NCBI RefSeq assembly: GCF_002113885.1
Contig: NW_018408880.1
Coordinates: 1,666,966-1,730,965 of the forward strand
Reading direction: 5' to 3'
DNA from: Mizuhopecten yessoensis
Lineage: Eukaryota
DNA length: 64,000 bases
In this document: positions 362 through 52,887 of the stretch, piece after piece
Position numbering within the stretch: the stretch's first letter is position 1
How the letters are laid out: each line of letters starts with the position of its first letter
Position numbers and translations under genes: made by a program
Notes under the pieces: generated by a model
What the model was told of the DNA's origin: nothing
Database searches by the model: none
Seen by the model: the letters and a program-made list of their open reading frames with translations, nothing else

Positions 362-3239
362 AATTACAACATGAAATCTAACCACAACTGTACATATTAT
401 GCGGAACATAAGTTATTTGTATTTCGGCTAGTATAACAATGCATTGCAGTCAGTACATATAAGACTGTTCATCGAAATGATTATCCGAACATTCTAATTG
501 AGTTTATCGACTAAAAGATAGTTTACAATAAATTATACTTTTTCTTTTAGAATTTTTCGTAAGGTTAATGAATTGATGTGGACACGTGAAGGCATATACA
601 TGGACGTTTGTAACCTCGTGTTATAGGTCTAAATTGCCCAAGTCCAGTCACATGTTGTCTGCACTTGTCATACATAAGGGAAGAGGGGGACTTTTAAAGA
701 GTTTTGTAAGTGTTGATTGGGCAAAACAAACTACACGCGCATGTATTATTGTCTAATAGTACATGGTTTACTTTAACCGGTGAAAAGTATCGTTATATCG
801 ACAGCGTCGTGTGATAGTCTTGATTAAAAGTACTGTGATATTATTTATTTATTATTTTGTTACGAAACAACTGTAAGTTTACACAGTTTTGATTTCGTGC
901 AATATTCTTTTCGTGGTTTTGTAATTTTCAAGTTATTTGTCGCTGTACATGTATTATTTCGTTCATTTCCAAAAGAGTATTTTGCGGATTGTGATAAATC
1001 TTTGGATTCCTTTATCTAAGGAAATAACACTGCTTTGATATATTGATGATGAATTTTAATTGGCTTTTTAAACACAGGGGCGTGGCAAGATCCCCAAACC
1101 CCACATTCCATACACATATATACAGACCGCATGGTGGGGGATCTGTGCCACGCCAATGTAGTTATAAAATATGAAGGATGCATTACTTTGTAAAGCAATC
1201 ATAGATTCAGAAATAAATTGATGAATATACATACACCTGTATTTTGTTCATTTACATGTACTTTCATTTTGTTTTCTTCAGCAGAGATTATATTTTGAAA
1301 TGGATATACTAAGTCATTCTCTGATTTTAAATACTGTATACAGTGAATCTTTCGCTTTGTCACACATTCGTCCTACGCCGATAAAATTCAACTTGATCAT
1401 ATGTTCATTTCGCCCTTTACGTTTGAAAACTATGTTAATCATGTTGTAAACTAATGTTGGTTCTGAAGATAAATTCGCTTGCATTGCGGAGGGCGAAACG
1501 TAAACTACGGCAAAAGTATCCTGGTAACGTATTTCTGTTAAAAAAATTAACATCATGAAAATAAAGAAGATGTTTTGACAACGAAAGCCACATGTATTTA
1601 TTTCCGACACAAATATGTACAAAATTAATAAACCAGGCAGTGAATATATGTTGCGTATTCATATGCTATCTTATAGATTATTTTCTTTAGCAGATGTTAC
1701 ATTTTAGAACACCGATATCAATCGATTTCTTAATCGTAAATTCTAATCTTATATTACAGATCATACTTCCATTCAGAAATAAAATATCAGGAATAAAAAA
1801 TGAGGTTATCATACGTGATATGTAGTTGATCCACTGACATCAGATCAGAAAATAGTTAATACATAAATATGTGAACACAGTAATAACTTTTACGTTATGT
1901 TTTCTTAAGAGGAAAGGAAATATCAAAATAAAAATATTAATTTAATCAATGATGCAGTTTCGGTAAACAATAAAACATGATACAAACTAAATCCAAACCA
2001 ATGTTATTATGGTGCTAAACGAATATTTTGCTGAAACACATTTAGTAATAATACATTTGGTTAAATCCGTGTTGCGTTGACTCGCAAGGCCGGTCTGTCA
2101 TAAAAAGAAAAATATCTTATGACTTTTTATGTATTCATATCAAAGTCAAATATATTTATTATATTATAGCTTTGTTACCGATTATCAGTCTAGAAAACGA
2201 TTGACAATAGATGCGTCCTCAACAGCTGATTACAAACCAAACATTTCGTTTTTTCTTCCTTTGGTCGTTTGTGAACAACATGATTTGAAATGAGTTATCT
2301 GAATTCAACTCAATTCAAGTTTATTTGGTAAAAAAGGTACAACAACATTTTCATACAGTACCCAATACATGTTTTGGCACTAATAATGTATATGGCTGAT
2401 TACATTATAAAACATATTAATGTAAAATTATATAAGTCTCTAAAAAAAGTTATCACACTTTTAAAAATTACAAGTTGAGTAATGGTTATGCCTACGAAAA
2501 ATAAAATAAGTAAAATATATGATGCCCTTAAAACCAGGATTACCCAGAAAGCCATGAAGCTTATTTCCACTGGGGTCCATTAAAAGACACATAAAGACTC
2601 CTTAAGTAAAAATTACTATAGTTATTATATTTTGAAGATAACTGGTTGTAACTTAAAACACATTATATCGAAGTACAGCACCCATATTGTGTGCACACTC
2701 ACATATTCACATACACACATACAAAAACATATATATAGAACATATTACGTTAATAAAATACAATTATCTTATCCTGTTCTCTTTTTAGTTTTACAAAAAG
2801 ATGTTTTTTGATCGCAACTTTGAACTCTGAAAGTTGATACTTTGAACTCTGAACCTGTTAATGTGATAAGTGTAAAAGTAAGGGAAAGGAAATTTCAATT
2901 TCATTTGTTTGAAAGTGAAAAGTTGTTTATATCTTAAAGGCAGGAAAGAGTACTCAGTTCTTAAAAAATGTCTCCACAGATTTTAACATTTATTTAGTAA
3001 ATAATATCATTTGTTTTTTACAGTAAAACAAAGCGATGTGATCATATTACTACCGTAATTCACAAACGCAGAACGAGGTCTATTGCCATCTAAAGCTATA
3101 ATAATCACACTGTTAATGTTTTCAAATGAAGACGATTGTTTCGTCCACCAATTGACATATTTATTTGAAGCAGTAAAAAAAGCTGTATTCGCAAAAAAGG
3201 GGTAAATAATCGCAATGCTTACAAGATTTTTTAATTTTT

Positions 3240-3690
3240 TTTACACACCATACTTCCAGAAGTTACTAAAAAATAATTTACATATCATACTGTTAAAAGA
3301 TAAAGTATGTATTCATTTTACACACCATACTTCTAGAAGATAATATATATAATTTACATATCATACTGTTAGAAGAAAATGTATATATTTATTTTACACA
3401 TCATACTTCTAGCAGATAATATATATAATTTACATATCATACCGTTAGGAGATAATGTATATATTCATTTTACATACCATACTTTTAGAAGATCATATAT
3501 ATAATTTACATATCATACTGTTAAAAGATAATGTATATATTTATTTTACACACCATATTTTTAGAAAATAATATATATAATTTACATATCATACTGTTAG
3601 ATGATCATGTAAATATTTCTTTTACACATCATACTTCTAGAAGATAATATATATAATTTACATATCATACTGTTAGAAGATAATGTATAT
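3240..3690. repeat. ~76-bp tandem repeat (two related ~38-bp halves), ~6 copies
   Basis: ttttacacaccatacttctagaagataat... recurs at 3316, 3392, 3468 etc. A shorter array is at 17470-17670. Confidence 0.9.
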
Positions 3691-4745
3691 AAAAACAAAT
3701 TTTACACTGCTAGCAAGATAATGTTTAACAATATCATATACGGAAATTCAAAAAGCTGTTTGAGTATGTATCATTACATTTGGGCCCGTAAATCCAGACA
3801 CTACCCTCCCCTTCTTCAATCTCCCCCACCTCTCCCCTCCACTATTATTTCAGTAATTGTCGGAACTACCGGGGTTTAGATAAACATACTGTTTAGCTGC
3901 TACTTCTTATAAAAGCGTTTTGATGTTACTTAATGCGGTTTATGTATTCAATTTCTCGAATATTTAGGAAATATTCTATTTTTGCGATTTCAGATTTTCA
4001 CAATTGACCTGAAAAGACATTTCCGCTAGGAATGTTATTCACAAAATGAATGATAACACATATTTAGTAATTGTTTTATGTGTTAAGTGAGTATTCATAA
4101 AATATCATTAGAATAAACGAAGAAAACAAATGTGATTTGCTATATATCCAAATTTTCGAATAAAACAGATGAGCCGATAGCGACTGCCCGATGTTTCTCT
4201 TAGAACTAGTTATGAGAAAATATATATTTTAAAAGAGGAGGTTTTCGCGGAGGGGAAATTCTTGCGTTTTTTTGCTTTGAGTAAATTAGCGCGAAAATAT
4301 GCACTAGCATAATATATGTATAAATGTTAATAAAGAGATTATTTAGATTATATTTACATGGTATATAAAGACTTCTGAACCATTGTCAACGCGACAATTT
4401 CCACACCGCGAACAGTTAACAGAGTTACAATCTTCAATCTTACAGATTCAGGAGAGCAGTGTTTGAATGGTAGTAGTCACATGATCTCCGTGGCACAAAA
4501 ACATTAGATTCCAACACCACCGCGATTTATTTCTATTAAGTAATAATTCAATTCAACACTGCACGGCCTTGTATATTCGCTTATGTTACTTTGCGAGATC
4601 AAAACATTTAACAGTTGCAGTCTGCCTGTTATGATACGTATGAGCATTCAGGCCACAAACGAAGTTTCAGAAATGGTACAAGATTTTGCCAGCAAAATCC
4701 ACTTGATAGTATTGAAGAATGATCATCCTGACCACCCAAGAAATT

Positions 4746-6374
4746 TCAGGAAATAGTACAAGATTTGCCATAGCTAGAATCACGATAGTATTGTAGAAGC
4801 TTCACCTTGTCCAAATCAGTAACAATCCAGACGATATTGTCCTGATCCAAACCCATCGCACTGATACACGTGCTGTCGGAGTGTATAACCGAAATGTGTT
4901 TCCCCTGATCACTGACAAGGTGAACAAAACGTCTGTCAGCTATAACCAGGCTTCCATGACTGTCATACGAAATATACGTGGGCTCCAAAATCGGCATGTC
5001 ATCTGTGTATTTGAACAGTATTTCGAAGTTTTTGTTCATGACAAGCACCTGTCTCCGAGGAGTGTTTTCATCGGATACGCTTAGATCCAAAATTGCGATA
5101 TTTTGAGAAACCCTACATTCGGAAATCTTGACTGGATTGTGCCCATTGAAATTTTCCGTTCCTGACAATTTCGTAGAAATTATCTTTCGGCCAGCAAGTG
5201 TGAATTTGGTGAGTTTTTGATTGGTTCCGATCAGGATGCGATTGTCATGTGTCGCACACAGACAAACGGGCCTGTCGTTGGTGAAGAATTGGAAACGAAA
5301 ACATGGATTTTTTGACAGCGAGCAATCCATCACGGACCAATTGTCCGCGGAACAGGCCCAAAGGGTTTGTGTGGTCGGAGAAACACTAATATCCCTAATT
5401 CTCAGGTTGGAGCTCACCCGTGCGTACACGAGGCCGTTCCTGTGCAAGAGAATTACACCTTTCATGTCAGAATAAGTCACCCAAACTCTATCATCTTGGT
5501 CGGTACATATGGTATTTCCAAAGTTAGATGAAACAGCGCCTTCAGTTATCACTTTAGCTTTTGGTAGTAGTCTATTCTTGGATGACACAGGTTCTGGCTG
5601 GGAACGTTTCTCATGCAAATGTTTGTTTGTCTCTGAATGTATTGATCTAGTTGTAGCAAGGTCATTCGACAGAGTAGACCACGACGAACCTGAAAATATG
5701 TCAGGGATTGCATCTCTCTCGTGCAGATCGACATGTTCAAAGGTACCAAATGCCTTTTCAAGGTTTTCATAAAAGTGGTCATTTGGAGTAAACCTGACAC
5801 TTTTAAGAGACGGTTTGAATGGATATACTAAAGCATCAGGAATATCAAAGTCGTAGATCTCAACATCACCTCCAGTTTGAAGGAACTCTTTACATTTTTG
5901 CAAATGTTTTTCAAAACTTTGCAGCCTTTTATGAAGTTTTTCCTTGAAATTCTTCAATTCCAAAGCATTTTCTTCTTCCAATACTTTATAAAGTCCTGTA
6001 AATTTTGCAATTTGAGCGTCTATCTCTTCTTTCATTCGGTTGCCTTGTTCCGTCAAATGTATGATATGATTCGCAAAATGTTCAGAATTATTTTTCAGTT
6101 CATTGTCTGTCCAATCCAACTCATTTCTGACTTCAAGTAAATCCTTTTTCTCTATATGCTCAATAAACTGCTGAATGTTTTCTTTCTTCGCTGCTATTTT
6201 GATACTTAGGTCTCCCAGAACGTGGTTCCTATGAACTGTATATAGACACTGGAGACATCCAAGTTCATTACACGTTTCACACTCGAAAATCACCTTGTTT
6301 CCATGGTGATAAGCACAGTTGGATTGACCTTTGCTCCTAACTGCCTGTTGACGTGCTGATGGTAAGTCGGCCAT
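4746..6374 (-). CDS. RING-less TRIM-like protein, copy 1 (B-box2, coiled coil, NHL-like beta-propeller, C-terminal CaaX), 542 aa, single coding exon
   Basis: ATG at 6374 (the ORF track starts at an upstream TTG). B-box CAYHHGNKVIFECETCNELGCLQCLYTVHRNH, a helical coiled coil, propeller blades (DQDDRVWVT, YDSHGSLVIAD, LDQDNIVWIV), ending CTIS*. Confidence 0.88.
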   Translation of the reverse strand: MADLPSARQQAVRSKGQSNCAYHHGNKVIFECETCNELGCLQCLYTVHRNHVLGDLSIKIAAKKENIQQFIEHIEKKDLLEVRNELDWTDNELKNNSEHFANHIIHLTEQGNRMKEEIDAQIAKFTGLYKVLEEENALELKNFKEKLHKRLQSFEKHLQKCKEFLQTGGDVEIYDFDIPDALVYPFKPSLKSVRFTPNDHFYENLEKAFGTFEHVDLHERDAIPDIFSGSSWSTLSNDLATTRSIHSETNKHLHEKRSQPEPVSSKNRLLPKAKVITEGAVSSNFGNTICTDQDDRVWVTYSDMKGVILLHRNGLVYARVSSNLRIRDISVSPTTQTLWACSADNWSVMDCSLSKNPCFRFQFFTNDRPVCLCATHDNRILIGTNQKLTKFTLAGRKIISTKLSGTENFNGHNPVKISECRVSQNIAILDLSVSDENTPRRQVLVMNKNFEILFKYTDDMPILEPTYISYDSHGSLVIADRRFVHLVSDQGKHISVIHSDSTCISAMGLDQDNIVWIVTDLDKVKLLQYYRDSSYGKSCTIS

Positions 6375-7229
6375 TTGAATCAATGTGTGTAAGTTAACAT
6401 GTTCTGTCGAGTAAATAAGTAAGTTTTACTGGCAAAGCAACACAACGTTGACGTTTTATACCTAACCGTTTGTAATAAATAATACAATTTTAATCAAACA
6501 GGAAGATAACAATTTTAGTAAATTTGATTGGTCAATGGCTTGTCCAATGGAAGTGGTAAATAGTTTATAGTTAATGTTTATAGTCAGATGAGCGTACCTA
6601 CATGTTAATAGCCCCGATATACCAATGGTTGTGTATGTTTAACATTAATAATCTGATAACCGATAACCGAATGGATATGATAGCAGATGATTTTAATTTA
6701 GACATTGTGCCATCATATCCATAAATGTTACTGATAACGCCTAAATTATGTGTAAATATATATATTAGCATTGATGATGAAATTACAGGGAGATCAACGT
6801 TAAGCACACACAGGAGATTGCAACTATGAAATTTGGTAATAGATACAGTTTGCCAAAAATGAATTACGCTACATCATACAGCTGTTTCGCCCTTCTATGA
6901 TTCATCGTTGATGCTAGGGGTCAAAAGCTGGGAAAACAAAATTGTCTAAACTACTGTTGAAACAGAAAGGCGAGGCGCATGAAAACCTCAAATCTATGAA
7001 TTTCAAAATAGAAACTTGTATTGATTCATTTCAAATTAAATGATTAGTAAAATGTGTACATTATGAACCGTGCTACTACTCAAAAGAGATTAGTGTGGCT
7101 ATCGAGGTTACGGCAAACCTTAGGGACTAAGAAATCCGCCAGCAGAACAATTTCAGATTCAATAGATTGGATAACGAACCATCTATCTCAAATTCAGCAG
7201 TGATGAATACGAACAATTCAATAAGCAAT

Positions 7230-8620
7230 TCAATTGATGTAGACCAATTCAGCAGAGTATGCGAATGACCAAAGCCACAAACAACTCCATTATAGGATCA
7301 CTAAACTGATCCAACAATATTAAAAAGAAAAATCAAGTGTTAATTCAACACAAAATACAATCGTTTCCCCGAATGATAATGTACCTGATAAGTTCAAACT
7401 CGATTCAACAACCAAAAACACCAGGACAGATGGAAACATGTCGATGAAGGCGCGCAAACATTTATAATTCATATATTAAATTGGTTTTTACTATTCTCTT
7501 TTTGCTCTACGAATCCGCAACTCTTCATATCACTGGCTTATTGTGATCATATAAAAATGTAAGAAATGACGACTTTTTACACGATTTGCTGGAACATAAA
7601 CAAGTTAGTTTATTTGTATTTCGGCTTTATAATGAAGTTCAGTCAGTGAATCAAATCACAGTCATTTTATATCGAAAACAAAATGATAACGGACACTAGT
7701 TTAAATTTTAAAAGTAAGGAGTTGACATATTGTTATATTGATTTTGCGAATTGACTTCATTCATATTTGTATATCTGTCACGCCGTGTGGCACATGGGCA
7801 TATCACAGATAAGATACAACTGATAATGATTTATATCAGCTTATAACAGTGGTATTTACTTTCGCACGTTTATGACATTGAAATGTATAACGAGGATACA
7901 ACAAATATTGATGCGAAAAAATATTTCCTGAGTAAATAATATTGCCAATGTTTGTGAATCCAGAGTTTTACATTCCATCATAACACCAACATTTTGCTGG
8001 AAATATATAAACTTAAATAACCACATGTAAATAAAATCAATTGCGATTTCGTATCTTTTTGGTTCCTTTAATGCAACGTGGCGTAGATAATGATCATTTT
8101 AAACTCTTTTTATTCATTCAAAGCCTCGTTTTCTTTCAACTAAAAGGCAAATGTTAAAGCTGATTTAACATTTATGGAAGATTTGAGTGGTCAACTAGTG
8201 CCAGTTTAAGGTAGATATGTCTTGAAACGTTTTGATATGTACATGCACGCATGTACCCTCAGTATACAAACCTAATGTGTCTAAGATCAGTCACATACGG
8301 TTCACTTATTTACATTCGTATAACAATGAAAACCTTTCACAGAACGTTGCACATTAATGATTTATTGGGCAAAAACAACAGCATGCACGAGCATGCATCA
8401 TTGTCAAATATTACAACTTTAGTATAATAAGTGAAAGGTGTCGTTACATTGCCGGCGAGGTATGATAGTCTTAAATGAAGCTCTGAGAATTTGATAAATA
8501 CGTTTATGAGAAATTGCTACATAACTTTATACAGCTTTGCTTTTGTGCAATATTATTTCAATACATTTATTTTCAAATGCCATTTCAAACTTTTGTTTTA
8601 ATTCGTGATTTTTGTCGTTG
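7230..8620 (+). pseudogene. Decayed paralog of the terminal exon and 3' flank seen at 1-950
   Basis: Colinear matches: acaaacaactcc..taggatca, accagg.cagatggaaac, ggaacataa..ttatttgtatttcggct, attgggcaaaa..tgatagtctt. The reading frame is disrupted. Confidence 0.6.
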
Positions 8621-8819
8621 TATATAATTAGGGATTCATCCAGTGTATTCCACGGGGTTTTTGAATTAACTGTGAAAAATATCCGAGTACATTATTGTTG
8701 TTTTGATAAATCAATTCTATTTTGTCGGTTTAAAAGGATTTCAAAATATATCGCTAATTAAAACATGTTTAAATTGGTTTTATTATGTTTGCGCCCTACC
8801 GATATTAACAGCTAAGTTC

Positions 8820-9085
8820 ATTTAAGGAACGGCCTCTATGTGTATTATGTATACGTGCATGTGTGTATGTGTGCTGAAGCCAGGGTATGTTGGTGTATTT
8901 GCCTGTTTGTGATAGCGCGTATCTGATGCCGACTTTACATTGCTACCTCACTGAAATACCTGCCCAAGACACCCAGCACAGCGTTCCTCTTGGTCACAGT
9001 ATACTGACAACAGATTAAACAGTTGTTGTCTTAACCCAAATTTTGACCGTTAAGCAAGAAATAACAACTACCATTTTAAGGATTT
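8820..9085 (-). mobile_element. Probable degenerate SINE body
   Basis: A (TG)-rich segment followed by tgctacctcactgaaata...gtcacagtatactgacaac, resembling mollusc SINE central domains (recalled, not searched). Confidence 0.35.
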
Positions 9086-10504
9086 ATAGTTTAACAATCC
9101 CGTGTTGAGAAATGGCAATAATGAATTAACATTTAAATGTGTATTTTTTTTATTTTTTTATTTGATTTTGTTTTGCTTGGGGAATATTATATTAAAAATA
9201 AATCAATGCAGTCATTGATTGTAAACATTTGTCTTACAGTTGATAAGAGCGAAGGTCTCGGGTGCCGTAGTCACACAAGCGGTGCTCTTTACCGGTAACA
9301 TGTGAGTGTAAATAGATCTGATCCAACCAAACTGATTCCATCACTGAATCGTACAGCCACAGCCTAGAAACGTTTCGTACTTCCGGTGACCTCTTCCGGT
9401 CCATGGAGCCCGTAAATATATCAAATAATTGTTTTATTCAACCACATTTAACAACAATACTGCTCAAGAACAACAAGTGCATCATGAAACTGACATCCAT
9501 TCCATCAGGTTAACACAATTATGACTGAACACAAGACAACACACAATCTTGCTCAAATTTGACAATGACATTAGAAGGGAATCAATCAAACATTGAGGAA
9601 AACATGGTCAAAATCGCAAAACCTCCCACAAAGAACGATGACACAAAGTTAAACCTCCAGAAACGTCACTTGCAAACAACTGTTTTTATCTGATATATGC
9701 CAATCAATCCCGAGGTATCTACAAAACTTAATTACAACAGCGACGATGAAAATGAGGAATCTCCTGCTATAGATACCTGGAATTTCTAAGGTATATGATT
9801 AGTACAAACATTAAATTTCCTCATTTCACGTGGATTATCTAAATTATTAAAAAGAAAAATCTTAAATCTTCATTTTATGCGTATAATGGTGTGAGACGTG
9901 ACAGTCTCTAACCTGCTATATCTAACACGCTAAACATATTTAAATTAAAAACAGATACATCCTTCATGGACTGGCATATCAGCTCAAACCATTTGTTTAA
10001 ACATGATGTCTACAACTCTCATTATCATGTTTACTCTATGATTTGTTTCTTTTTGATCAAAATAATAATATATAATATTATGAACAGACATGAGTAGAGG
10101 GAGGGTGTATATAAATGTATACTTTTATTCTTGGATAAAACAAGAACCAAATGAGGATACTATTACCAGCAATATGGTCTAGTATTACTGTAGTACAAAC
10201 CAGTCAACTTCAAGCTAACATGTGATGCGTCATATTGGTGTAGTGTGAATGTGGATCATTCTAAAACAGAGCACACATAAGTACAAGGATGAATGATTTT
10301 CCCCAGCAACAGATTCAAGTTTATTATACAAAACCAAGTACAGGTACATTTTGTATGTATTAAAATGGGTAATGTTATGATTCAAAAATTATACTATACT
10401 ATTGAAACAACTGTACAGTATGTGCTTCGCTCTCTCCAGGCCATGCCTGAATCAGAAATACAAGTAATAAATACATGTATATAAATAAAATAATCTGTAA
10501 ACAT

Positions 10505-11000
10505 AATGAAGAATCGTTTTCTCTCATTTCCCTGTGTGTAAGATAGAGCTATCCAGGGTAAGAAAGGGGTGTAGGAAATGTCTACCTTACACCCCATTCC
10601 ACGTGAGGTGACGTCACAATAGCTCGACAATGACGTGAAGTCACGAATTTGGAACTCTCCTATGCCGCAATGCGGAAAAGGCGCGACCAGATCAAATTAA
10701 AACCCTTTTACGATATATTTACCGTACACGTTAGATAGATGTGATTAATTTTCCTAAGCAAACCTCGTTTGCCAATATGGGATAAGTTTAATACGGCTGG
10801 CTGATTCATTTTCGTTTAAAAAGCTCAGGGTGGGGTATTTTCAAAATGGTGGCCAGTCCAAATGCATTTTCATGGTTTCTGAACTTATTTGTGTGGTTAG
10901 AATGAGAGAAAAATACTCTTTCATGCTCGGGGGTGTAGGATAGGGAAATTCCACCCAGGGATTTTCCTATCCAACACCCCTGAGCATGAATGAGTCTTAT
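10505..11000. mobile_element. Non-autonomous repeat with a terminal ~32-bp-arm hairpin (Crypton-like or MITE-like)
   Basis: 10921-10989: tcatgctcgggggtgtaggatagggaaattcc / gggattttcctatccaacacccctgagcatga. A related ggggtgtagga motif is at ~10566. Confidence 0.45.
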
Positions 11001-13514
11001 AATATTTTTGTATGTATTATCTTTATAATCTGTTTTCTAAAGCAGAGTTAAAAAATTATTTGCAAATACATAAAACAATTGTAAAAGAATATCGCGTTCA
11101 CCCTTTACACAATAAAACATTATGACAAACAAAAACCTTAATCAATATACACTGAGCTATCATAACCAACTAGCAACTTGTTAATATCCCGTCGATTGAT
11201 ACCTCTTAAAAGGAACACTCAGGAATAACTGATTTTTTTATTATTTTATTTTTGCAAATACTTGCAGAAAAGATGTTTGAAATTTAAAATATTACTAGTT
11301 CAGAAAATGATTAACAGAATGTGCGTCGTCGACAACAAAGTTGCAGCCAAAATATGTATTGTTCTTCCTTCACTTAACTAGGCCTGGAAGAAGGCATAAT
11401 GTGAGCGTATAAGATAAGGATGCAGAAAACATAACCAGTGGACAAGACACGTGTAGTTTATAAAAAAAAAAACGATGGAAGCTTTTTTGTCGATGCCTGG
11501 CAATCATGAGCTTTGATAGTTTCACATAATGGTCTGATGCTGTTTCCTTTTTATTGTTCCACTGTCATCAGAGGGCACAATAATTAAAAACAAGACAAAA
11601 CGTTTTTTAAACCACTTTTGAGGGTCAGTCATAAATTAGCATTCTTATTCATAATTTCCCTATATGAACCTGGTCATTTATAAGTACATGTAATATGAAA
11701 AAAATACTCCGTTTCTCAAAGAATGACTCGGCAGATTTTAACATTTTATTTAGTAAATAGCATCCTTACGATATTTGAGTTAAAACGAAAAAGGTTCACG
11801 TTTTCAGACCATAAAGGTAGACCATCCAAAATATGTAGACTAAAAACCTAGGGGGTCCTAACAATGAGCACATTTCGATTGTGATGTTCCAATAGGGCCA
11901 AACAATGTGCAGATTCAAGGCTTTTCTGGGTACATACAAAACTAGTGTAACAGAGGCCATTATTTATCGATGCTTCCGCTTAGAGTCGAACATATGACCT
12001 CTGGTTTACTAGTCCTAATCTAAACTCATCAATCTCGCTATAATTCAACAATTAACAAAATGTTAAACTCACGTTTCTTAACTGTCTTGTCTGACTTTGA
12101 AAGAACAGCACCTAGGTAGCAGTATACAGTAGAGGGATGTGGCCATGGGTGATATTTTTGTTAAATGGCTAACCCCTGTATAATGATATGTAAAAAAATA
12201 TAAAAATAAAACTGTACTAAAATTGGTATAAGCATGATGACGTGGGCTATGTGAGCTTCACATTTGTAAAAAAGAAAGAAGATTTCTTTGGTTCGAGAGT
12301 AAAATGTTGGCCATAATCCGAAAGGGTGCGTACACATGAAAAGCTAGCTTTACAGGAGGTAAAATTTGACAACAGCACACGACGCGAAATTGCAAAAAAT
12401 GTAGTTTTACAACTTTACTGGTACCCAGATAAATCTGCAACCAGGTAGGTAATCTTTAATTTCAGACAGAGCTTAGGAAAAAAAAATTCTAGTTGCGGGG
12501 GTCAAATTTTAGGTTAAAATAGCAATTTTTGGCATTTTTTGGTAATTTTTGATGTGGTTACCATGGTTTTCACACTAGTGACATACATTGAAAAAAGAGG
12601 TTTATACACTTCTCAGTACTTTATATGCATTGTAAATGTAAAGCAGTTTACAAATATATATACATGTATACATGTGTTGTGTAGGGTAAATCCGCTGTGT
12701 TTACATTTCCTCGACATGTGCCTTGTTTATCAGAGTCGGGCCATTTCTACTGTACACTGCTACCCTAGAAGATCCGAAAATCTATATTTTACACAGTTGT
12801 ATTACATAGTACATGAAATAAGGAATGATAATAAACACATTTGATGAAAGATTCAGTTTATTGATTCACTTGCAATGTGTTTTTACGGGAGTACATAGAG
12901 CTCAATTTGCAATAATGTGTTAGTTTATATATGAACAATTCGAAACATCCTTAACAAGTATTAGACACTCTTTTCTAAGATTTGTCCTTGTTATACTCCG
13001 CCAACTTGTTCTAAATCGTCCGCAGTAGGAGTGAAAAAAACACCAATTATTTAGACAAAACAACAGTACATCAACCACAAAGTTCGTGACAATTGACCCG
13101 TTGAATTAATGTCTTTTGATGTATTGCAACTTGACAATCATGTGACCGTGCGGATATTGCTTATAAGAACGTAAAGTAAAAAGTTAAAATCTGTTCACAG
13201 AGCAATGTATCCACTTAGTAAAGGGAAATTTTAAAATAGCATAGATACAGTTGCTTTCGATACTAGTACTAGTCTATAAAGTGTATAACAAAAACAGTGC
13301 ATTATGTAATTTAGGGTAATAACACGATTTGTTTTCAATCGATATGACTGCCGGAATTTCCACTTAAATAGCACTTCTTTTCCAAAATCTCCTTAAATTC
13401 AGCACATCGCGTACTGGTTTTTTTCCACACTTTTACGCGAAAACAGCAATGGACGAAATCAAAGCGATGTACTTCATTGTAATAAGGAACATTCTGGTTG
13501 CCCCTATCTAATTT

Positions 13515-15143
13515 TCAGGAAATGGTTCAAGATTTGCCATGACTAGAATCATGATAGTATTGAAGAAGCTTCACGTTGATCAAATCAGTGACAATCCAGA
13601 CGATATTATCCTGATCCAAACCGATCGCTCTGATACACGTGCTGTCAGAGTGTATAACCGAAATGTGTTTCCCCTGATCACTGACAAGATGAACAAAACG
13701 TCTGTCAGCTATAACCAGGCTTCCATGACTGTCATGCGAAATATCCATGGGCTCCAAAATCGGCATGTCATCTGTGTATTTGAACAGTATTTCGAAGTTT
13801 TTGTTCATGACAAGCACCTGCCTCTGAGGAGTGTTTTCATCTGATACGCTTAGATCCAAAATTGCGATATTTTGAGAAACCCTACATTCGGAAATCTTGA
13901 CTGGATTGTGCCAACTGAAATTTTTCGTTCCAGACAATTTCGTAGAAATTCTCTTTCGGCCAGCAAGTGTGTATTTAGTGAGTCTTTGATTGGTTCAGAT
14001 CAGGATGTGACTGTCATATGTCACACACAGACAAACGGGCATGTCGTTGGTGTAGAATTGGAAACGAAAACATGGATTTTTTGACAGCAAGCAATTCATC
14101 ACGGACCAATCGTCTGCGTAACAGGCCCAAATGGTCTGTGTGGTTGGAGAAACACTAAAATCCGTAATTCGCAGGTTGGAGCGCTCCTCTGTGTACACGA
14201 AGCCGTTCCTGTGCAAGAGAATTGTACCTTTCATGTCAGAATAAGTCACCCAAACTCTATCCTCTTGGTCTGTACATATAGTATTTCCAACGTTAGATTT
14301 GACTGCGACTTCAGTTATTACTTTAGCTTTTGGTAGTAGTCTATCTTTGGATGACACAGGTTCTGGCTGGGAAAGTTTCTCGTGCAAATGTTTGTTTGTC
14401 TCTGAACGTATTGATCTAGTTGTAGCAATGTCATTCGACTGAGTAGACCCCGACAAACCTGAAGATATATCAGGGATTGCATCTCTCTCGTGCAGATCGA
14501 CATGCTCAAAGGTACCAAATGCTTTTTCAAGGTTTCCATAGAAGTGGTCGTTTGTAGTAAACCTGACTTGTTTTAGAGAAGGTTTGAATGGACATACAAA
14601 AGCATTAGGAATAGCAAAATCGTAGATCTCAACATCACCTCCAGTGTGAAGGAACTCTTTACATTCTTGCAAATGTGTTTCAAAACTCTGCAGCCTTTTA
14701 TGAAGTTTTTCCTTGAAATTTTTCAATTCAAAAGCATTTCCTTTTTCCAATACTTTATAAAGTCCTGTAAATTTTGCAATTTGAGCGTCTATCTCTTCTT
14801 TCATTCGATTGCCTTGTTCCGTCAAATGTATGATATGATTCGCAAAATGGTCAGAATTATTTTTCAGTTCATTGTCTGCCCAATCCAACTCATTTCTGAC
14901 TTCAAGTAAATCCTTTTTCTCTATATGCTCAATAAACTGCTTGATTTTTTCTTTCTTCGCTGCTATTCTGATACTTAGGTCTCCCAGAACGTGGTTCCTA
15001 TGAACTGTATGTAGACACTGGGGACATCCAAGTTCATTACACGTTTCACACTTGAAAATCACCTGCTTTCCATGGTGATAAGCACAGATGGATTGACCTT
15101 TGCTCCTTACTGCCTGTTGACCTGCTGATGATAAGTCGACCAT
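13515..15143 (-). pseudogene. TRIM-like copy 2 with two in-frame nonsense codons
   Basis: Same length and frame as copies 1 and 3. GGA>TGA at 13995-13997 and TGT>TGA at 13527-13529. The ancestral stop is retained at 13515-13517. Confidence 0.85.
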
Positions 15144-17465
15144 TTGAATCAATGTGTGTAAGTAAACACGTTCTGTCGAGTAAATAAGTAAGTTTTACTG
15201 GCAAAGCAACACAACTATGACGTTTTATATCTAACCGTATGTAATAAATAATACAATTTTAATCAAACAGGAAGATAACAATTTTAGTGAATTTGATTGG
15301 TCAATGGCTTGTCCAATGGAAGTGATAAATAGAACAATATTTATAGTCAGATGAGGGTACCTACATGTTAAAAGCCCCGATATACCAAAGGGTGTGTATG
15401 TTTAACATTAATAATCTGATAACCGATAACCGAATGGATATGATAGCAGATGCTTTTAATTTAGACATTGTACCATCATATCCATTATTGTTACTGATAT
15501 GTATCAATATATATATATATAAACATTGATGATGCAATTACAAGGAGATCAACGTTAAGCACACACAGGAGATTGCAGCTATGAAATTTGGTAATAGATA
15601 CAGTAAGCCAACAATGAATTACACTACATCATACAGCTGTTTCGCCCTTATATGACTCATCAGTGATGTGAGGGGCTGAAAAGGTGGAGAAGCAGAATGG
15701 GTGGTGTGTAAACCCCTTTATTAAACGAATTTCAAAAATAACAGGAGTACTGGTTACTTCAATAACTTTAATAACGAATAAAGTGTGTATATTATGAACT
15801 CAAAAAAAAGATTACTGTCACCTTCAATGTTACAGCAAACCGCGGGGACTAAGAAATCCGCCGGCAGAGTCAACCGCCTTGTACCTTGAAAAATGAACGA
15901 AACACACACGTGATTGCGTCTGTACAATGTTGGTAATAAATAGAGTATGCCAAAAGTGAATTACACAGCATCATATACATATGCAAGACCACACACTTGC
16001 GTTTTTCTAACGAATCAGAAAGCACGATACACTAGTGGGTGGTCTTGCTTTTATCACATACCTTTCGTATTTGGTAGAGATCGATACAAAGATTTTTATA
16101 AACTTTGAAATTTTTTGCAATTAACGGGAACTTTTAAGTTCGCCATGGCAAGGGAATTCCCATAAAAAGTCGTCCCGGCTAGTAGGTAAATACAACATTC
16201 TGTATTGTACATGTGCAATACAGAACGTTGTATTTCATGGTCTGAAAATTGCTTGTATGGCTATAACAAGATTCAACAGGAATGTGATAAAGATAGTTAA
16301 TAGTACATAGCGAAATAAAGGTATTGAGACTATAGTCTTTTTAAAAATAGTGATATGCCAATTCTTTTGCAGTTAATACATACACTGAATCGAACAATGA
16401 ATGGAATCCAGGTCAACTCAACATCTAATATTATGTGCCATTACATAAACAGGGTTAACCTTATTTTTTCGAAGTCGATGAGAAAGTGGAAAAAACTTGA
16501 CTCATTGATGGTACTAATAGTCAAACAATTCAAATTCATTGCAATACTCTGTGACTGTATATCACCGGAAAATAAATCATCAGCCGTGATATGTGTCACG
16601 ACCTTATAATAACACGAAAAACATGTCCTCATGTGATCTAGTCATCTTGCAGTGAAATAACACCTTCACATACATGTTAAAATATTTAACAATTAAAAAA
16701 AACAATTATTGTGATGTCGTATGCAATGGTTTCAGGAATTATCGTGAAAGCAAAAATGACGGCACTTTGCTAGGTTTTATGTCCAAATGTGTTACTTATA
16801 GCAAGGAATATGGTATAATGAAGAAGAATAACAATTTCGCTGGAACTTATTTCTTAAAAAATATATACTTATAAAAGCAATTTGCTTAAAGACCTTGATA
16901 TATATTTCCTTGACTTTTTCAGGTCTGGCAACATGAAATAAATGTGTCATAATAATGGTTGGGTGTCTCTGGTAGAGAAGAAGACAATACACATTACTGC
17001 AGATGAGTTTAATTGGCGACAGTTACATATACATGTACTGAGTTTAATTGGCGACAGTTACATATACATGTACTGAGTTTAATTGGCGACAGTTACATAT
17101 ACATGTACTGAGTTTAATTGGCGACAGTTACATATACATGTACTGAGTTTAATTGGCGACAGTTACATATACATGTACTGAGTTTAATTGGCGACAGTTA
17201 CATATACATGTACTGAGTTTAATTGGCGACAGTTACATATACATGTACTGAGTTTAATTGGCGACAGTTACATATACATGTACTGAGTTTAATTGGCGAC
17301 AGTTACATATACATGTACTGAGTTTAATTGGCGACAGTTACATATACATGTACTGAGTTTAATTGGCGACAGTTACATATACATGTACTGAGTTTAATTG
17401 GCGACAGTTATATATACATGTACTGCATATAACTTAAATTTTGCAAGACATACACATTCGCGTTA
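15144..17465. repeat. Segmental duplication: upstream flank of copy 2, paralogous to ~19768-21725 and in part to ~6375-7145
   Basis: Long colinear identity, for example 16590-17004 versus 21225-21645. The spurious ORFs are also shared. Confidence 0.9.
17005..17424. repeat. 35-bp minisatellite, 12 near-identical copies
   Basis: Unit gagtttaattggcgacagttacatatacatgtact. It is present once at the paralogous site 21646-21680. Confidence 0.95.
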
Positions 17466-18138
17466 ATATTTATTTTACACACCATACTTCTAGAAGATAA
17501 TATATATAATTTACATATACTGTTAGAAGATAATGTTTATATTTATTTTACACACCATACTTATAGAAGATAATATATATAATTTACATATCATACTGTT
17601 AGAAGATAATGTATATATCTATGTTACACACCATACTTCTAGACATACTGATAGAAAATAATATATATACAAACAAAGTTTACACTGCTAGCAAGATAAT
17701 GTTTAACAATATCATATACGGTAATTCAAAAAGCTGTTTGAGTATGTATCATTACATTTGGGACGGAAATCCAGACACTACCCTCGCTTTCTTCAATATC
17801 CCCCACCTCTCCCCTCCACTATTATTTCAGTAATTGTCAACGCGACAATTTCCACACTGCGATCAGTTTACAGAGTTACAATCTTCAATCTTACAGATTC
17901 AGGAGAGCAGTGTATGAAGGGTCGTAGTCACATGATCTCCGTGGCACAAAAACATTAGATTCCAACACAACCGCGAATTATTTCTATTAAGTAACACTTC
18001 AATTCAACACTGCGCGGCCTTGTAATTTAAGTATGAACATTCAGGCCACAAACGAAGTTTCAGGAAATGGTACAAGATTTGCCAGCAAAATACACCTAAT
18101 AGTATTGAAGAATGATCATCCGGACCACCCAAAAAGTT

Positions 18139-19767
18139 TCAGGAAATAGTACAAGATTTGCTGGAGCTAGAATCATGATAGTATTGTAGAAGCTTCACCT
18201 TGTTCAAATCAGTGACAATCCAGACGATATTGTCCTGATCCAAACCGATCGCTCTGATACACGTGCTGTCGGAGTGTATAACCGAAATGTGTTTCCCCTG
18301 ATCACTGACAAGGTGAACAAAACGTCTGTCAGCTATAACCAGGCTTCCATAACTGTCATACGAAATATCCATGGGCTCCAAAATCGGCATTTCACCTGTG
18401 TATTTGAACAGTATTTCGAAGTTTTTGTTCATGACTAGCACCTGCCTCTGAGGAGTGTTTTCATCGGATACGCTTAGATCCAAAATTGCGATATTTTGAG
18501 AAACCCTACATTCGGAAATCTTGACTGGATTGTGACCATTGAAATTTTCCGTTCCTGACAATTTCGTAGAAATTTTCTTTCGGCCAGCAAGTGTGTATTT
18601 GGTGAGTCTTTGATTGGTTCCGATCAGGATGTGACTGTCATTGGTTGCACACAGACAAACGGGCATGTCGTTGGTGTAGAATTGGAAACGAAAAAATTGA
18701 TTTTTTGACAGCAAGCAATTCATCACGGACCAATCGTCTGCGGAACAGGCCCAAAGGGTATGTGTGGTTGGAGAAACACTAATATCCATAATTCTCCGGT
18801 GGGAGCGCACCTCTGTGTTCACGAGGCCGTTCCTGTGCAAGAGAATTACACCTTTCGTGTCAGAAAAAGTCGTCCAAACTCTATCAGTTCGGTCGGTACA
18901 TATGGTATTTCCAACGTTAGATTTGACTGCGACTTCAGTTATTACTTTAGCTTTTGGTAGTAGTCTATCTTTGGATGACACAGGTTCTGGCTGGGAAAGT
19001 TTCTCGTGCAAATGTTTTTTTGTCTCTGAACGTATTGATCTAGCTGTAGCAATGTCATTCGACTGAGTAGACCCCGACGAACCTGGAGATATATCAGGGA
19101 TTGCATCTCTCTCGTGCAGATCGACATGCTCAAAGGTACCAAATGCTTTTTCAAGGTTTCCATAGAAGTGGTCGTTTGAAGTAAACCTGACTTGTTTTAG
19201 AGAAGGTTTGAATGGACATACAAAAGCATTAGGAATAGCAAAGTCGTAGATCTCAACATCACCTCCAGTTTGAAGGAACTCTTTACATTCTTGCAAATGT
19301 GTTTCAAAACTCTGCAGCCTTTTATGAAGTTTTTCCTTGAAATTTTTCAATTCCAAAGCATTTCCTTCTTCCAATACTTTATAAAGTCCTGTAAATTTTG
19401 CAATTTGAGCGTCTATCTCTTCTTTCATTCGGTTGCCTTGTTCCGTCAAATGTATGATATGATTCGCAAAATGTTCAGAATTATTTTTCAGTTCATTGTC
19501 TGTCCAATCCAACTCATTTCTGACTTCAAGTAAATCCTTTTTCTCTATATGCTCAATAAACTGCTGGATTTTTTCTTTCTTCCCTGCTATTTTGATACTT
19601 AGGTCTCCCAGAACGTGGTTTCTATGAACTGTATGTAGACACTGGAGACATCCAAGTTCATTACACGTTTCACACTCGAAAATCACCTGGTTTCCATGGT
19701 GATAAGCACAGATGGATTGACCTTTGCTCCTTACTGCCTGTTGACCTGCTGATGATAAGTCGACCAT
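18139..19767 (-). CDS. RING-less TRIM-like protein, copy 3 (B-box2, coiled coil, NHL-like propeller, CaaX), 542 aa
   Basis: Intact ORF from ATG 19767 with the same architecture as copy 1. Ends SSSKSCTIS*. Confidence 0.88.
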   Translation of the reverse strand: MVDLSSAGQQAVRSKGQSICAYHHGNQVIFECETCNELGCLQCLHTVHRNHVLGDLSIKIAGKKEKIQQFIEHIEKKDLLEVRNELDWTDNELKNNSEHFANHIIHLTEQGNRMKEEIDAQIAKFTGLYKVLEEGNALELKNFKEKLHKRLQSFETHLQECKEFLQTGGDVEIYDFAIPNAFVCPFKPSLKQVRFTSNDHFYGNLEKAFGTFEHVDLHERDAIPDISPGSSGSTQSNDIATARSIRSETKKHLHEKLSQPEPVSSKDRLLPKAKVITEVAVKSNVGNTICTDRTDRVWTTFSDTKGVILLHRNGLVNTEVRSHRRIMDISVSPTTHTLWACSADDWSVMNCLLSKNQFFRFQFYTNDMPVCLCATNDSHILIGTNQRLTKYTLAGRKKISTKLSGTENFNGHNPVKISECRVSQNIAILDLSVSDENTPQRQVLVMNKNFEILFKYTGEMPILEPMDISYDSYGSLVIADRRFVHLVSDQGKHISVIHSDSTCIRAIGLDQDNIVWIVTDLNKVKLLQYYHDSSSSKSCTIS

Positions 19768-22011
19768 TTGAATCAATGTGTGTAAGTTAACATGTTCTGT
19801 CGAGGCAACACAACGTTGACGCTTTATACCTAACCTTATGTAATAAATAATACAATTTTAATCAAACAGGAATATAACAATTTTAGTAAATTTGATTGGT
19901 CAATGGCTTGTCCAATGGAAGCGATAAAAATAACAATGTTTATAGTCAGATGAGCGTACCTTCATGTTAATAGCCACCGATATACTAATGGGTGTGTATG
20001 TTTAACATCAATAATCTGATTACTGATAACCGAAAGGATATTTTAATTTAGACAGTGTACTAGCATATCCGTAATTGTTACTGATAAAGCTTCTGCTGTG
20101 GTTATGCATTAAGAATATATACATTTTGTACATAAACATTAATGATGAAATTACAGGGAGATCAACGTAACATCATACTGCTGTTTCGTCCTTCTATGAC
20201 TCATCGGTGATGTAAGGGGCTGAAAAGGTGGAAATCCGAATTGTTTAAAATATTGTTGAAGCAGAATGGGAGGTGTGTTAACCCTTAATTAAACGAATTT
20301 CAAAAATAACAGAAGTACTGGTTACTTCAATAACTTTAGTAACGGGTAAAATCTGTATATTATGAACCCCAAAAAAACCATTACAGTCACCTTCAATGTT
20401 ACAGCAAACCTCTGGGACTAAGAAATCCGCTAGCAGAGTCTACCGCCTTGTATCATGTGATTGCACCTTAACAATTTGGGTAATAAATAGAGTATGCCAA
20501 AAGTGAATTACACAGCATCATATACATATGCAAGACCACACACTTGTGTTTTTCTAACGAATCAGAAAGCCCGAAATACAAGTGTGTGGTCTTGCTTTTA
20601 TCACATACCTTCGGTATTTGGTAGAGATCGATACAAAGATTTTATAAACTTTAATATTTTTTGCAAATACCGGGAACTTTTCGGTTCGCCATGGCAAGGG
20701 GATTCCCATAAAAAGTAGTTCCGGCTAGTAGGTAAATAGAACATTCTGTATTGCACATTTCATGGTCTGAAAATTGCTTGTATTACCATAACAAGATTCA
20801 ACAGGTATGTGATAAATCTAGTTAATGGTACATAGCGAAATAAAGGTGTTTAGACTCAAGTCTTTGTAAAATAGTGATATGTCAATTCTTTTGCAGTAAA
20901 TACATACACTGAATCGAACAATGAATGGAATCCAGGTCAACTCAACATCTGATGTTATGTACCATTACATATACAGTTTAACCTAGTTATGTCGAAGTCG
21001 ATGGGATAGTGGGAACAAACTTCCGAGTTCGAATTCGAGTTAAATGAGTTTCCATGTTTGGTATTCATTTCTTTATAATGTTTGGTTAAACAGGAGACTA
21101 TCTGAGGAAGTGTTTTTACTACACAAGATGATTTTCTGTCTACGTCTCATCGATGGTACTTATAGACAAAAAAAATCAAAATCCTTGCAATACTCTGTGA
21201 CTGTAGATCACCGGAAAATAATTCATCAGCCGTGATATGTGTCACGACCTTAAAATATCACGAAAAACATGTCCTCATATGATCTAGTCATCTTGCAGTG
21301 AAATAACGACTTCACATACTTGTAAAAAATGTAACATGTCAAATGAACAATTGTGATGTCGTATGCAATGGTTTCAGGAATTATCGTGAAAGCAAAAATG
21401 ACGGCACTTTTCTAGGTTTTATGTCCAAATGTGTTACTTATAGCAAGGAATATGGTATAATGAAGAAGAATAACAATTTCGCTGGAACTTATTTCTTCAA
21501 AATATATACTTATAAAAGCAATTTGCTTAAAAACCTTGATATATATTTCCATGACTTTTTCAGGTCTGGCAACATGAAAAAAAATTGTCATAATAATGGT
21601 TGGGTGTCTCTGGTAGAGGTGAAGACGATACACATGACTGCAGATGAGTTTAATTGGCGACAGTTACATATACATGTACTGCATATCACTTACATTTTGC
21701 AAAAGACATACACATTCGCGTTAATTCGTGAATTATCATACATAAAGCTAACAAATATTGATCAAACACATGCATATTGATATGTATTAATTCATTTGGT
21801 GAACTCATTTGTTTTTTAAATAAGTATTTACGAATAATCAGCTGGACCTACTTATAGTTAGTAAAAGCAATGAATCTTTTGTCAGACTGCACATGCTGGT
21901 TTTCTGTGTTCCGTCTCGATAAATTTGTTGATTCTTGTTCACGGTGAAACCTTGTCAGTTTCAACAATTTTGTTTCTGTATACAGTGGAACTTTATCAGT
22001 ACCGATACTGT

Positions 22012-51061: not shown

Positions 51062-52887
51062 CTATAACAGAGATCCACAAAGTGTCAGGAAAATTACAGC
51101 ACTCGAAACACCTCGGACATATAAAATCATTTGAAATATGCACCTAAGAAACTTATTCGATAAAATGTTGTTTGGATTATACGCGGTATTACAAATGGAC
51201 AATTTCCAAGCAAATCAAAAAAAAGGTTGCGAAGGGTCTTCTGACGCAATTCTGAAATAAATTGAGGTCCATGTGCAAGTTATGTATAACAGTGGTAGAA
51301 AAGTATGATTATGACAATATAAAATTCATATTTGTCATCGGGCGATAGTTCATTACAAGGATAAAAACGTTTTGAAACATTTTGTGTAGTGGAGGCCTCT
51401 CAATCCAGTGCCTATATTGCTGCTTTAAAGGCACATTATAATATTTATTTCCTTTTGCTGCACATAATACTCGAAAGAGGGTATTGCAGAATATCTAGAT
51501 AGATATTATGCAAACATGACGTCATACTCCCGTGTTTTCACTATGACGTCACAATCAACGTGAAGTGTTCTTAACATTACATCAATATGTAACAAACGTT
51601 TATTTGATGCTGTTACGCAATGGGATAACGGAATGAAAGGATACGTATAAAATATATGAATATGTAATATTGTTTATTTGTATGTGTAGGCATTTCCAGT
51701 CGGGTATCTTCGGGTTTTTCCGGCATGTGAAGTTTTGTTTTTTTCCGCAGAATTCCGGAAATTTCCGAGAATGTGCGATATATTGGTATTTCGAAAACTA
51801 ACCTGCATTTCTGTCATCGAAACAAGCAAAGGCGTTCTTAATGACTTCCTCTGGGTCGGTCCCGTTTAATTTCTCCCCGAAGAGTGTCAGAAACATGGTA
51901 AAGTTGATTGGGCCCGGGGCCTCGCTCACCATCTTATCTAGGTACTCATTGGAGGGATCCTTCCCTAGTGACGTCATCAGGTCAAGAAGGTCATCCTTGT
52001 CGATGTAACCGTCTCGGTTTTGGTCAATCATGTTAAAGGCTTCCTGGCAAATGACAACTTGAAAACTTACCAAGTGAACATAAAATTACATTTAATCGAG
52101 ATTCAGCATACGCGGGAAATGTTTTCTACATAATGACTTGTAGTATACTCGGTTGTATCCCTTTATTTTACAAACATATAAAGATCCAGTTAATTTATCA
52201 CATAGCTGCTGAATCTTGTTATAGTAATACAAGCAATTTTCAGACCATGAAATACAACGTTGTCTTTACTTACTAGCCGTAACTCCTTTTTATGGGAATC
52301 CCCTTGCCATGGCGAACTGAAAACTTCCCGGTATTTGCAAAAATTATCAAAGTTTATAAAATCTTTATATCGATCTCTACCAAATACGGAAGTTATGTGA
52401 TAAAAGCAAGACCACACACTTGTGTTTTTCAAACGAATCAGAAAGCACGAGTTTATTGCGCGGACGAATATATATATTCACGAGTGCGCTGAGTGTGGTC
52501 TTGCATATTTATATCACCTGTCTGATCAGAATAACACAATTGATCGTTTATTTTATTTGCAAAATATTTGATCAATTTTGATAATTTATGCCTTTTTCTG
52601 CGTTTGTTGGAAAATTGATAAATATCAGAAATTTTCTCAAAATGTGTTTTAATTGGGATCTAACAAATGAAGGGAGATAACTAATGAATTCACTGCAAGG
52701 CCTCGTACTTTACGTGTTCAAATATAACATGGATATATCAGAAACCGTCTGACCTCATACTTTGGCCTTGACCCTGAGTACTGACCTTGAACTCTTGTAT
52801 TTGTGCCTGGTTAAACATGGCGAACACATTTGATGTGTATCTCTGGGTCCGAGACCGGTGCTTCTTCTTGGATTTCATCGACGACAT
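50835..52887 (-). CDS. Myosin regulatory light chain, non-muscle/smooth type (sqh/MYL9/MYL12-like), 3 coding exons, 189 aa
   Basis: join(52887-52786, 52043-51803, 51061-50835). [73 protein letters not shown]. Confidence 0.93.
51803..52043 (-). CDS. Myosin RLC second coding exon
   Basis: [12 protein letters not shown]...[11 protein letters not shown]|gttagt. Confidence 0.93.
52190..52508 (-). mobile_element. Dispersed repeat also present at ~15978-16300 and ~20525-20825
   Basis: Shared body (tttggtagagatcgat.aaagattttataaact...gccatggcaagggga.tcccataaaaa) and a gcaagaccacacac inverted repeat. Confidence 0.8.
52786..52887 (-). CDS. Myosin RLC first coding exon
   Basis: [34 protein letters not shown]|gtcagt. 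A splice acceptor ttttccacag lies just upstream at ~52911. Confidence 0.9.

Follow-up and report, generated by a model that had tools for sequence, protein, structure and literature searches.

Does a B-box/propeller protein whose last four residues match those of a farnesylated GTPase carry a genuine prenylation tail, or is its ending an accident of a fast-changing C-terminus? This question is raised by the minus strand of a 64,000-nucleotide (nt) window from the scallop Mizuhopecten yessoensis (contig NW_018408880.1, positions 1,666,966 to 1,730,965; all coordinates below are positions in this window). The strand holds three tandem units of one gene, of which copies 1 and 3 are intact, while copy 2, which lies between them, is a pseudogene. 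Both intact copies end in C-T-I-S, a CaaX box. We consider it rather probable that copies 1 and 3 are expressed, intronless genes for RING-less TRIM-NHL-like proteins and belong to a small sublineage with a real CaaX prenylation tail. Sequence comparison indicates that this tail is probably genuine and selected, in a minor sublineage of a scallop gene expansion and not family-wide.

We read the termini of the two intact copies directly in the DNA. Copy 1 (P0002) has a coding sequence at 4746..6374 on the minus strand, which is intronless and comprises 542 codons plus a stop, taken as the translation of its open reading frame (ORF). Copy 3 (P0001) has an intronless coding sequence of the same size at 18139..19767, also on the minus strand. 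The first ATG stands at 6374 in copy 1 and at 19767 in copy 3, giving 542 residues; the ORF length of 545 residues found in the ORF listing counts from an upstream TTG. An earlier note on this DNA, made from its letters alone, had assigned these genes the span 4746-19767, which begins at the copy 1 stop and finishes at the copy 3 ATG. In both copies, the terminal codons are aaa tct tgt act att tcc tga, which spell K-S-C-T-I-S-stop just as that note reported. On the minus strand, the CaaX box occupies 4749..4760 in copy 1 (Cys codon, 4758-4760; stop, 4746-4748) and 18142..18153 in copy 3 (Cys codon, 18151-18153; stop, 18139-18141). The complete tails are R-D-S-S-Y-G-K-S-C-T-I-S in copy 1 and H-D-S-S-S-S-K-S-C-T-I-S in copy 3. 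Copy 2 (13515..15143, minus strand) has the length of the other copies and no indels, and it contains two nonsense codons. One of these is a TGA at 13995-13997, where the other copies have a Gly codon, and the other is a TGA at 13527-13529, exactly at the CaaX Cys codon of the other copies. The likeness of copy 2 to the other units stops at 13510, about 5 nt past its terminal stop codon (13515-13517).

The window tails have a Cys at position -4, an aliphatic a2 residue (Ile), and Ser as X, the features that define the CaaX class at the sequence level. Human GBP1 ends in CTIS and is farnesylated there, and Ser at X specifies farnesyltransferase (PMC2903825), so the comparison with GBP1 drawn in the earlier note is confirmed. 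The available text and supplements of one screen of CXXX termini (PMC11152559) and the available supplements of another (PMC10320760) contain no scores for CTIS or CSIS. Judging from the motif and its setting, we consider it very likely, at a fair rather than a high level of confidence, that the window CTIS is farnesylated, since it stands on a predicted disordered, Ser-rich tail of an expressed cytosolic protein. Three other interpretations of this ending were rejected. It does not fit a class I PDZ ligand, in which the last residue must be hydrophobic, nor a peroxisomal targeting signal 1 (PTS1, the S-K-L type) or a KKXX signal.

The B-box/coiled-coil/propeller architecture proposed for these proteins is borne out by several lines of evidence. 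We found that zf-B_box (PF00643) scored above the Pfam gathering score in all three copies, with an E value of 3e-06 in copy 1. It was the sole Pfam match obtained with single sequences; the NHL model was not reached, and there was no RING match. The B-box ligands (C20, H23, C32, C35, C40, C43, H48, and H51) are nearly invariant across 57 relatives. When a profile of these 57 relatives was compared with the PDB, it matched the NHL domains of TRIM71, TRIM3, and TRIM2 at E values of 3e-21 to 8e-20, and it also matched the B-box/coiled-coil chains of TRIM3 (1e-17), TRIM28, TRIM25, and TRIM5. The AlphaFold model of copy 3 has a mean predicted local distance difference test score (pLDDT) of 83.3. 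In this model, a B-box (residues 18-55) is followed by a single long helix of about 110 residues (residues 56-167; pLDDT, ~90), a disordered linker (residues 218-263), a six-bladed NHL propeller (residues 269-530; pLDDT, ~95), and a 12-residue tail (residues 531-542) that is predicted to be disordered, with pLDDTs of ~59 and ~52 in the last two 10-residue blocks. The best solved match in Foldseek was the NHL domain of TRIM2, with a template modeling (TM) score of 0.75 on the target and a root mean square deviation of 3.7-3.9. The NHL domains of TRIM3, TRIM71, Thin, and Brat came next, and the whole set had TM scores of 0.70-0.75 on the target. We conclude that the window proteins are RING-less and TRIM-NHL-like.

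The lack of a RING also holds for what appears to be the transcript of copy 3. All three copies have ~265 nt of sequence before the ATG in common, with a TATA box and CCAAT/ATTGG boxes. The TATA box of copy 3 (19823..19828) stands 61 nt ahead of the ATG, and a CCAAT box (19895-19899) and an ATTGG box (19912-19916) lie farther upstream, all on the minus strand. This set of elements is conserved in copies 1 and 2, whose TATA boxes are at 6455-6460 and 15224-15229 on the same strand. An in-frame stop precedes the ATG by 93 nt in copy 3 and by 54 nt in copy 1, and only 17 residues precede the B-box in the ORF. Parts of the copy 3 stretch occur in 18 public runs that come from six studies. We aligned the contigs of X1 and X2, two small runs that belong to separate studies, to 17650-21600, a region that covers copy 3 only. 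The X1 contig covers 17789-19750 and the X2 contig covers 17692-19802, so that the probable transcript extends over 17692..19802 on the minus strand and is unspliced, with a 5' untranslated region (UTR) of about 35 nt and a 3' UTR of about 350-450 nt. Both contigs cross the last seven codons and the stop of copy 3 without a variant, and neither has a joint or a loose end within copy 3. The X2 contig ends (19802) 21-26 nt downstream of the TATA box. The flanks of copy 3 (~19900-20150, 20290-20420, and 20950-21345) have zero depth in X1 and X2; the exceptions are a high-copy repeat at 20422-20817, a short low-depth X2 contig near 20212, and a patch that begins at 21361. Because coverage has the shape of the gene, we argue that X1 and X2 are RNA, and if they are, copy 3 would be a single exon with its own promoter. 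The position of the TATA box and the jointless contig end at 19802 argue that no RING exon is spliced on upstream. The contigs run unspliced through the stop codon, which argues against an alternative C-terminus; splicing to another ending, which the earlier note had named as fatal to its proposal, was not found.

An exhaustive HMMER search of family representatives gave 305 clusters at an E value of ≤1e-3, and we read the termini of the 150 that were listed. All of the representatives that were looked up by name came from scallops (Argopecten, Mizuhopecten, and Pecten). Canonical CaaX ends occur in 5 of the 150 listed matches. Two of these are the window proteins P0001 and P0002. The others are P0004, from a 2.1-kb Logan contig of SRR27895283 (G-K-K-R-T-K-C-S-I-S); P0060, the single-exon M. 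yessoensis protein XP_021346299.1 (C-R-P-K-K-Q-E-C-S-I-S); and P0037, the single-exon Argopecten irradians protein XP_069106943.1, which ends in D-K-N-K-C-C-V-L-L. For comparison, CVLL was fully geranylgeranylated in a humanized yeast assay (PMC11152559). A conserved last-blade motif is present in 85 listed members, 71 of which end 0-6 residues past it. Tails of at least 10 residues occur in 10 members, and half of these (5/10) have a CaaX end. Word-index searches recovered no further CaaX members: whether the query was copy 3, a six-protein alignment, or P0004, the matches were limited to the window proteins, P0003, and P0004 itself.

We asked how often such endings would arise by chance. The CaaX 4-mer pattern occurs at 0.35% of internal positions in the same proteins. 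At this rate, 0.52 canonical CaaX ends are expected among 151 proteins, and we observed 3-4 independent lineages (Poisson p of 0.016 to 0.002). Cys at -4 by itself shows no enrichment (8 cases versus 4.9 expected), in agreement with the CXXX endings of ~6% of human proteins (PMC11152559). We also found second membrane signals beside the CaaX box in the relatives: P0004 has K-K-R-T-K, P0060 has R-P-K-K together with an upstream Cys, and P0037 has C-C. With its polybasic stretch and CaaX box, the tail of P0004 resembles that of K-Ras. In the contig that encodes P0004, gtaagg directly follows the stop (L001:2075-2085) and looks like a consensus splice donor, and 412 nt with CCAAT-type boxes precede the ATG. 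Given these two features, this contig may be genomic DNA rather than a transcript.

We built a tree under LG+G4 after removing the last 14 residues. P0004 is the sister of the window pair with 100% support in the Shimodaira-Hasegawa-like approximate likelihood ratio test, at a path of 1.3-1.4 changes per site and 39% identity, and P0060 and P0037 fall in two other well-supported groups. The CaaX label needs at least three changes on the tree, with carriers in at least three lineages. The approximately unbiased test, run on a 28-row subset, rejected monophyly of the four proteins that end in C[ST]IS (p of 0.017), a group that was named after the tree had been seen. The tail is either old and frequently lost or was gained several times, and one nonsense mutation suffices to lose it, as in copy 2. 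Either way, the window proteins and P0004 still agree in the Cys, Ile, Ser, and stop position although the linker is wholly replaced. By sequence comparison, this points to selection on the CaaX box in the clade of the window proteins and P0004.

The comparison of copies 1 and 3 is less informative. They are 87% identical in protein with a synonymous divergence (dS) of 0.08 and are therefore young duplicates, so their shared ending is one observation, not two. The ratio of nonsynonymous to synonymous divergence (dN/dS) between them is 0.75 overall, 0.32 in the coiled coil, ~1.0 in the propeller, and 0.85 in the tail. Variation is greatest in the propeller, whose first blades differ at 20-24% of residues. 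In the tail, 3 of the first 6 residues differ and none of the last 6, a pattern that is suggestive of constraint on the CaaX box, though not significant.

Two other explanations of the CTIS ending have to be weighed. The ending may have arisen neutrally: in a family with birth-and-death evolution, a short C-terminal extension that changes fast would spell CaaX in a few members by accident, with no selected function whether or not it is farnesylated. This is the more serious alternative, and we hold it to be unlikely, though by no means negligible. It would explain why CaaX ends are rare among the listed representatives, why a Cys at -4 is not enriched, and why dN/dS between copies 1 and 3 approaches 1 in the propeller and is high in the tail, and it draws support from humans, in whom most proteins ending in CXXX are not known prenyl proteins (PMC11152559). 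The tail-coding DNA also lies in small tandem duplications, both in the window and elsewhere in Mizuhopecten, and such unstable sequence is able to make odd termini. However, neutrality does not predict that canonical CaaX ends exceed chance, that independent second signals accompany them in P0004, P0060, and P0037, or that the Cys, Ile, Ser, and stop position persist between the window proteins and P0004 at such low identity with a replaced linker. The other explanation holds that the array is decaying and that copies 1 and 3, recently relaxed, are heading for the state of copy 2, with C-termini that have no present function. One of the three copies is already dead, dN/dS is high overall, and two sampled RNA-seq runs gave zero reads. 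We nevertheless regard decay as improbable, given two intact 542-codon ORFs free of indels, a constrained coiled coil, a conserved TATA/CCAAT promoter, and gene-shaped contig coverage in runs of at least two studies, among the 18 runs that contain part of the stretch.

Our preferred reading, a selected prenylation tail on copies 1 and 3, has its own difficulties. Among the listed representatives, 145 of 150 lack a canonical CaaX end, and most of them stop directly behind the propeller. One of the 145 is P0003 from A. irradians, the closest annotated homologue, which ends in KLLKYYK and belongs to the 71 members that stop 0-6 residues past the last-blade motif. The idea in the earlier note that CaaX ends might be enriched among paralogs and present in homologs therefore stands in part: they exceed chance and occur in P0004, the nearest relative, as well as in two more lineages of scallops, and they are absent from P0003 and from the large majority of listed members. 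Its suggestion of a prenylated family does not stand for the family as a whole, in which CaaX is a minor, recurrent variant inside a RING-less TRIM-NHL expansion. The window tails contain one Lys and no additional Cys, that is, no polybasic or palmitoylatable second signal, so the membrane affinity of a monomer would be weak. A second membrane signal is not obligatory for prenylation. The status of X1 and X2 as RNA was deduced from the coverage pattern, and the RNA label is itself a guess. Two true RNA-seq runs, of which ~18-19% of reads were sampled, gave no read on copy 3, so its expression is not general. The pair formed by copies 1 and 3 is young and evolves at the high dN/dS given above, overall and in the propeller, so the identity of its tails proves little. 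Finally, the CaaX clade is thinly sampled and consists of the window pair plus one 2.1-kb Logan contig. We count on the favorable side that the sole dead copy, copy 2, is the one without the Cys codon.

If the preferred reading is correct, a cytosolic farnesyltransferase would lipidate Cys539 in the exposed, Ser-rich disordered tail, as it does with the CTIS of GBP1, and cleavage of -TIS and carboxymethylation would probably follow. Solved TRIM coiled coils are antiparallel dimers. By homology, the coiled coil of the window proteins would pair two chains and so bring two farnesyl groups to each dimer. These two groups may be enough for peripheral binding to endomembranes without a polybasic or palmitoylated second signal. 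The fast-evolving NHL propeller would then meet its ligand at the membrane surface. The lack of a RING excludes an E3 ubiquitin ligase activity of the window proteins' own, and they would act by scaffolding, sequestering, or recruiting partners. Lipidation, dimerization, localization, ligand binding, and a sensor or immune role are properties that we infer for the window proteins. A broader proposal, which we offer tentatively and think doubtful as it stands, is that scallops repeatedly gained, or long kept, lipid anchors that station a subset of variable RING-less TRIM-NHL propellers on membranes. Under this same joint proposal, the farnesyl C[ST]IS and geranylgeranyl CCVLL tails would carry Ras-like second signals. 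If true, scallops would offer an invertebrate equivalent of the cell-autonomous immunity that GBP1, ZAP-L, and OAS1 p46 direct to membranes in vertebrates, and the scallop proteins would be the first lipid-anchored TRIM-type proteins.

The DNA around the tails has features of its own. In the 3' UTR of copy 3, a degenerate second unit of the last ~60 nt of the coding sequence plus the stop (18049..18112, minus strand) spells G-K-S-C-T-I-S-stop, and copy 1 has its equivalent at 4661-4719 on the minus strand. The duplicate lies ~62 nt downstream of the tail, and its local alignment score is 62 in copy 3 and 56 in copy 1, compared with 15 ± 2 for shuffles. In the P0060 gene (L002:9634-9803), the first unit of a 40-nt minisatellite of 4.1 copies is the whole tail plus the stop. 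Tail-coding DNA is thus tandemly duplicated in two separate CaaX lineages, which could bear on the origin of the tail. The 3' UTR duplicate of copy 3 also contains L-Q-Y-Y-TAG, from which a recent stop-loss origin of the tail was considered. We rejected this because the TAG is derived: at this codon, the copy 1 duplicate has CAA and the coding copies have CAT.

Several other repeats lie in the window. Just downstream of copy 3, a 35-bp tandem array (16899-17528) contains seven overlapping 210-nt register windows that are mutually 100% identical, and related arrays flank other units (3231-3691 and 21645-21725). Upstream of copies 2 and 3 there is a high-copy repeat (20422-20817, also at 15907-16115 and 52193-52450). 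At 20422-20817, its summed contig depth in X1 reaches ~2000, and both true RNA-seq runs contribute reads. Around 20530-20596, some reads link one strand to the other. The repeat is probably a transposable element that is expressed and contains an inverted repeat. At 21361-21600, low-depth contigs of X1 and X2 overlap a 145-amino-acid ORF (21343-21780, plus strand) without a Pfam match, and a homologous patch lies upstream of copy 2 (16501-17040). Farther along, a 37-bp satellite of ~127 copies with 79% matches (34645-39401) accounts for the strong GC/AT skew and the stack of overlapping ORFs in that interval, which have no Pfam match. A 158-bp tandem repeat of 3.7 copies is found at 40428-40999.

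The window proteins can be compared with several known systems. With the TRIM-NHL proteins (class VII of the tripartite motif proteins: vertebrate TRIM2, TRIM3, TRIM32, and TRIM71/LIN-41, and Brat and Thin of Drosophila), they share a type 2 B-box of the form C-H-C-C-C-C-H-H, followed by a predicted long coiled coil, a disordered linker, and an NHL propeller of six blades. They differ in having no RING, no filamin domain, a single B-box, and a CaaX tail, and in being encoded by intronless genes in tandem arrays with a fast-evolving propeller. Brat also lacks a RING. The closest likeness in organization is to the scallop expansion of RING-less B-box/coiled-coil/NHL genes itself, which has the same architecture, the same intronless tandem arrangement, and change that is likewise concentrated in the propeller. 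Unlike most of its members, which end within a few residues of the last blade, the window proteins, P0004, P0060, and P0037 have a tail of at least 10 residues with a CaaX end. The CaaX tail is the new part, and the RING-less B-box/coiled-coil/NHL architecture is not new.

Membrane attachment of other TRIM-type proteins takes a different form. TRIM13 and TRIM59 are B-box/coiled-coil proteins that are attached to endomembranes by a C-terminal transmembrane helix, and they keep the RING and have no NHL propeller. In contrast to that helix, the putative anchor of the window proteins is a lipid and would be reversible. We know of no TRIM-type protein with a CaaX or prenyl tail, and our search of the literature for prenylated TRIMs or bivalve TRIM-NHL expansions found nothing relevant. 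TRIM-type proteins reach membranes through partners or a transmembrane helix, and a prenylated TRIM-NHL protein, if true, would be a new mode of positioning for a recognition scaffold that is widespread. A lipid-anchored sub-branch, if true, would also offer a hypothesis for where in the cell a large, fast-evolving RING-less family meets its ligands.

Human GBP1 (CTIS), GBP5 (CVLL), ZAP-L (CVIS), and OAS1 p46 (CTIL) are prenylated innate-immune proteins, in each of which a soluble recognition or effector protein is targeted to membranes by a C-terminal CaaX box. The window proteins have the same CTIS as GBP1, and their putative functional analogy is with GBP1, ZAP-L, and OAS1 p46. The folds are unrelated to those of the scallop proteins: a dynamin-like GTPase in GBP1, CCCH/PARP in ZAP-L, and a nucleotidyltransferase in OAS1 p46. 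The CaaX box is necessary for full antiviral activity and membrane localization of ZAP-L (PMC8568172) and OAS1 p46 (PMC8357416). A transplanted CaaX box was sufficient for geranylgeranylation of OAS1 (PMC8357416), and one transplanted to ZAP-S raised its membrane association and antiviral activity (PMC8568172). In vertebrates, a CaaX box decides whether ZAP or OAS1 can act at membrane-bound viral replication sites, and a lipid-anchored scallop sub-branch, if true, would parallel this.

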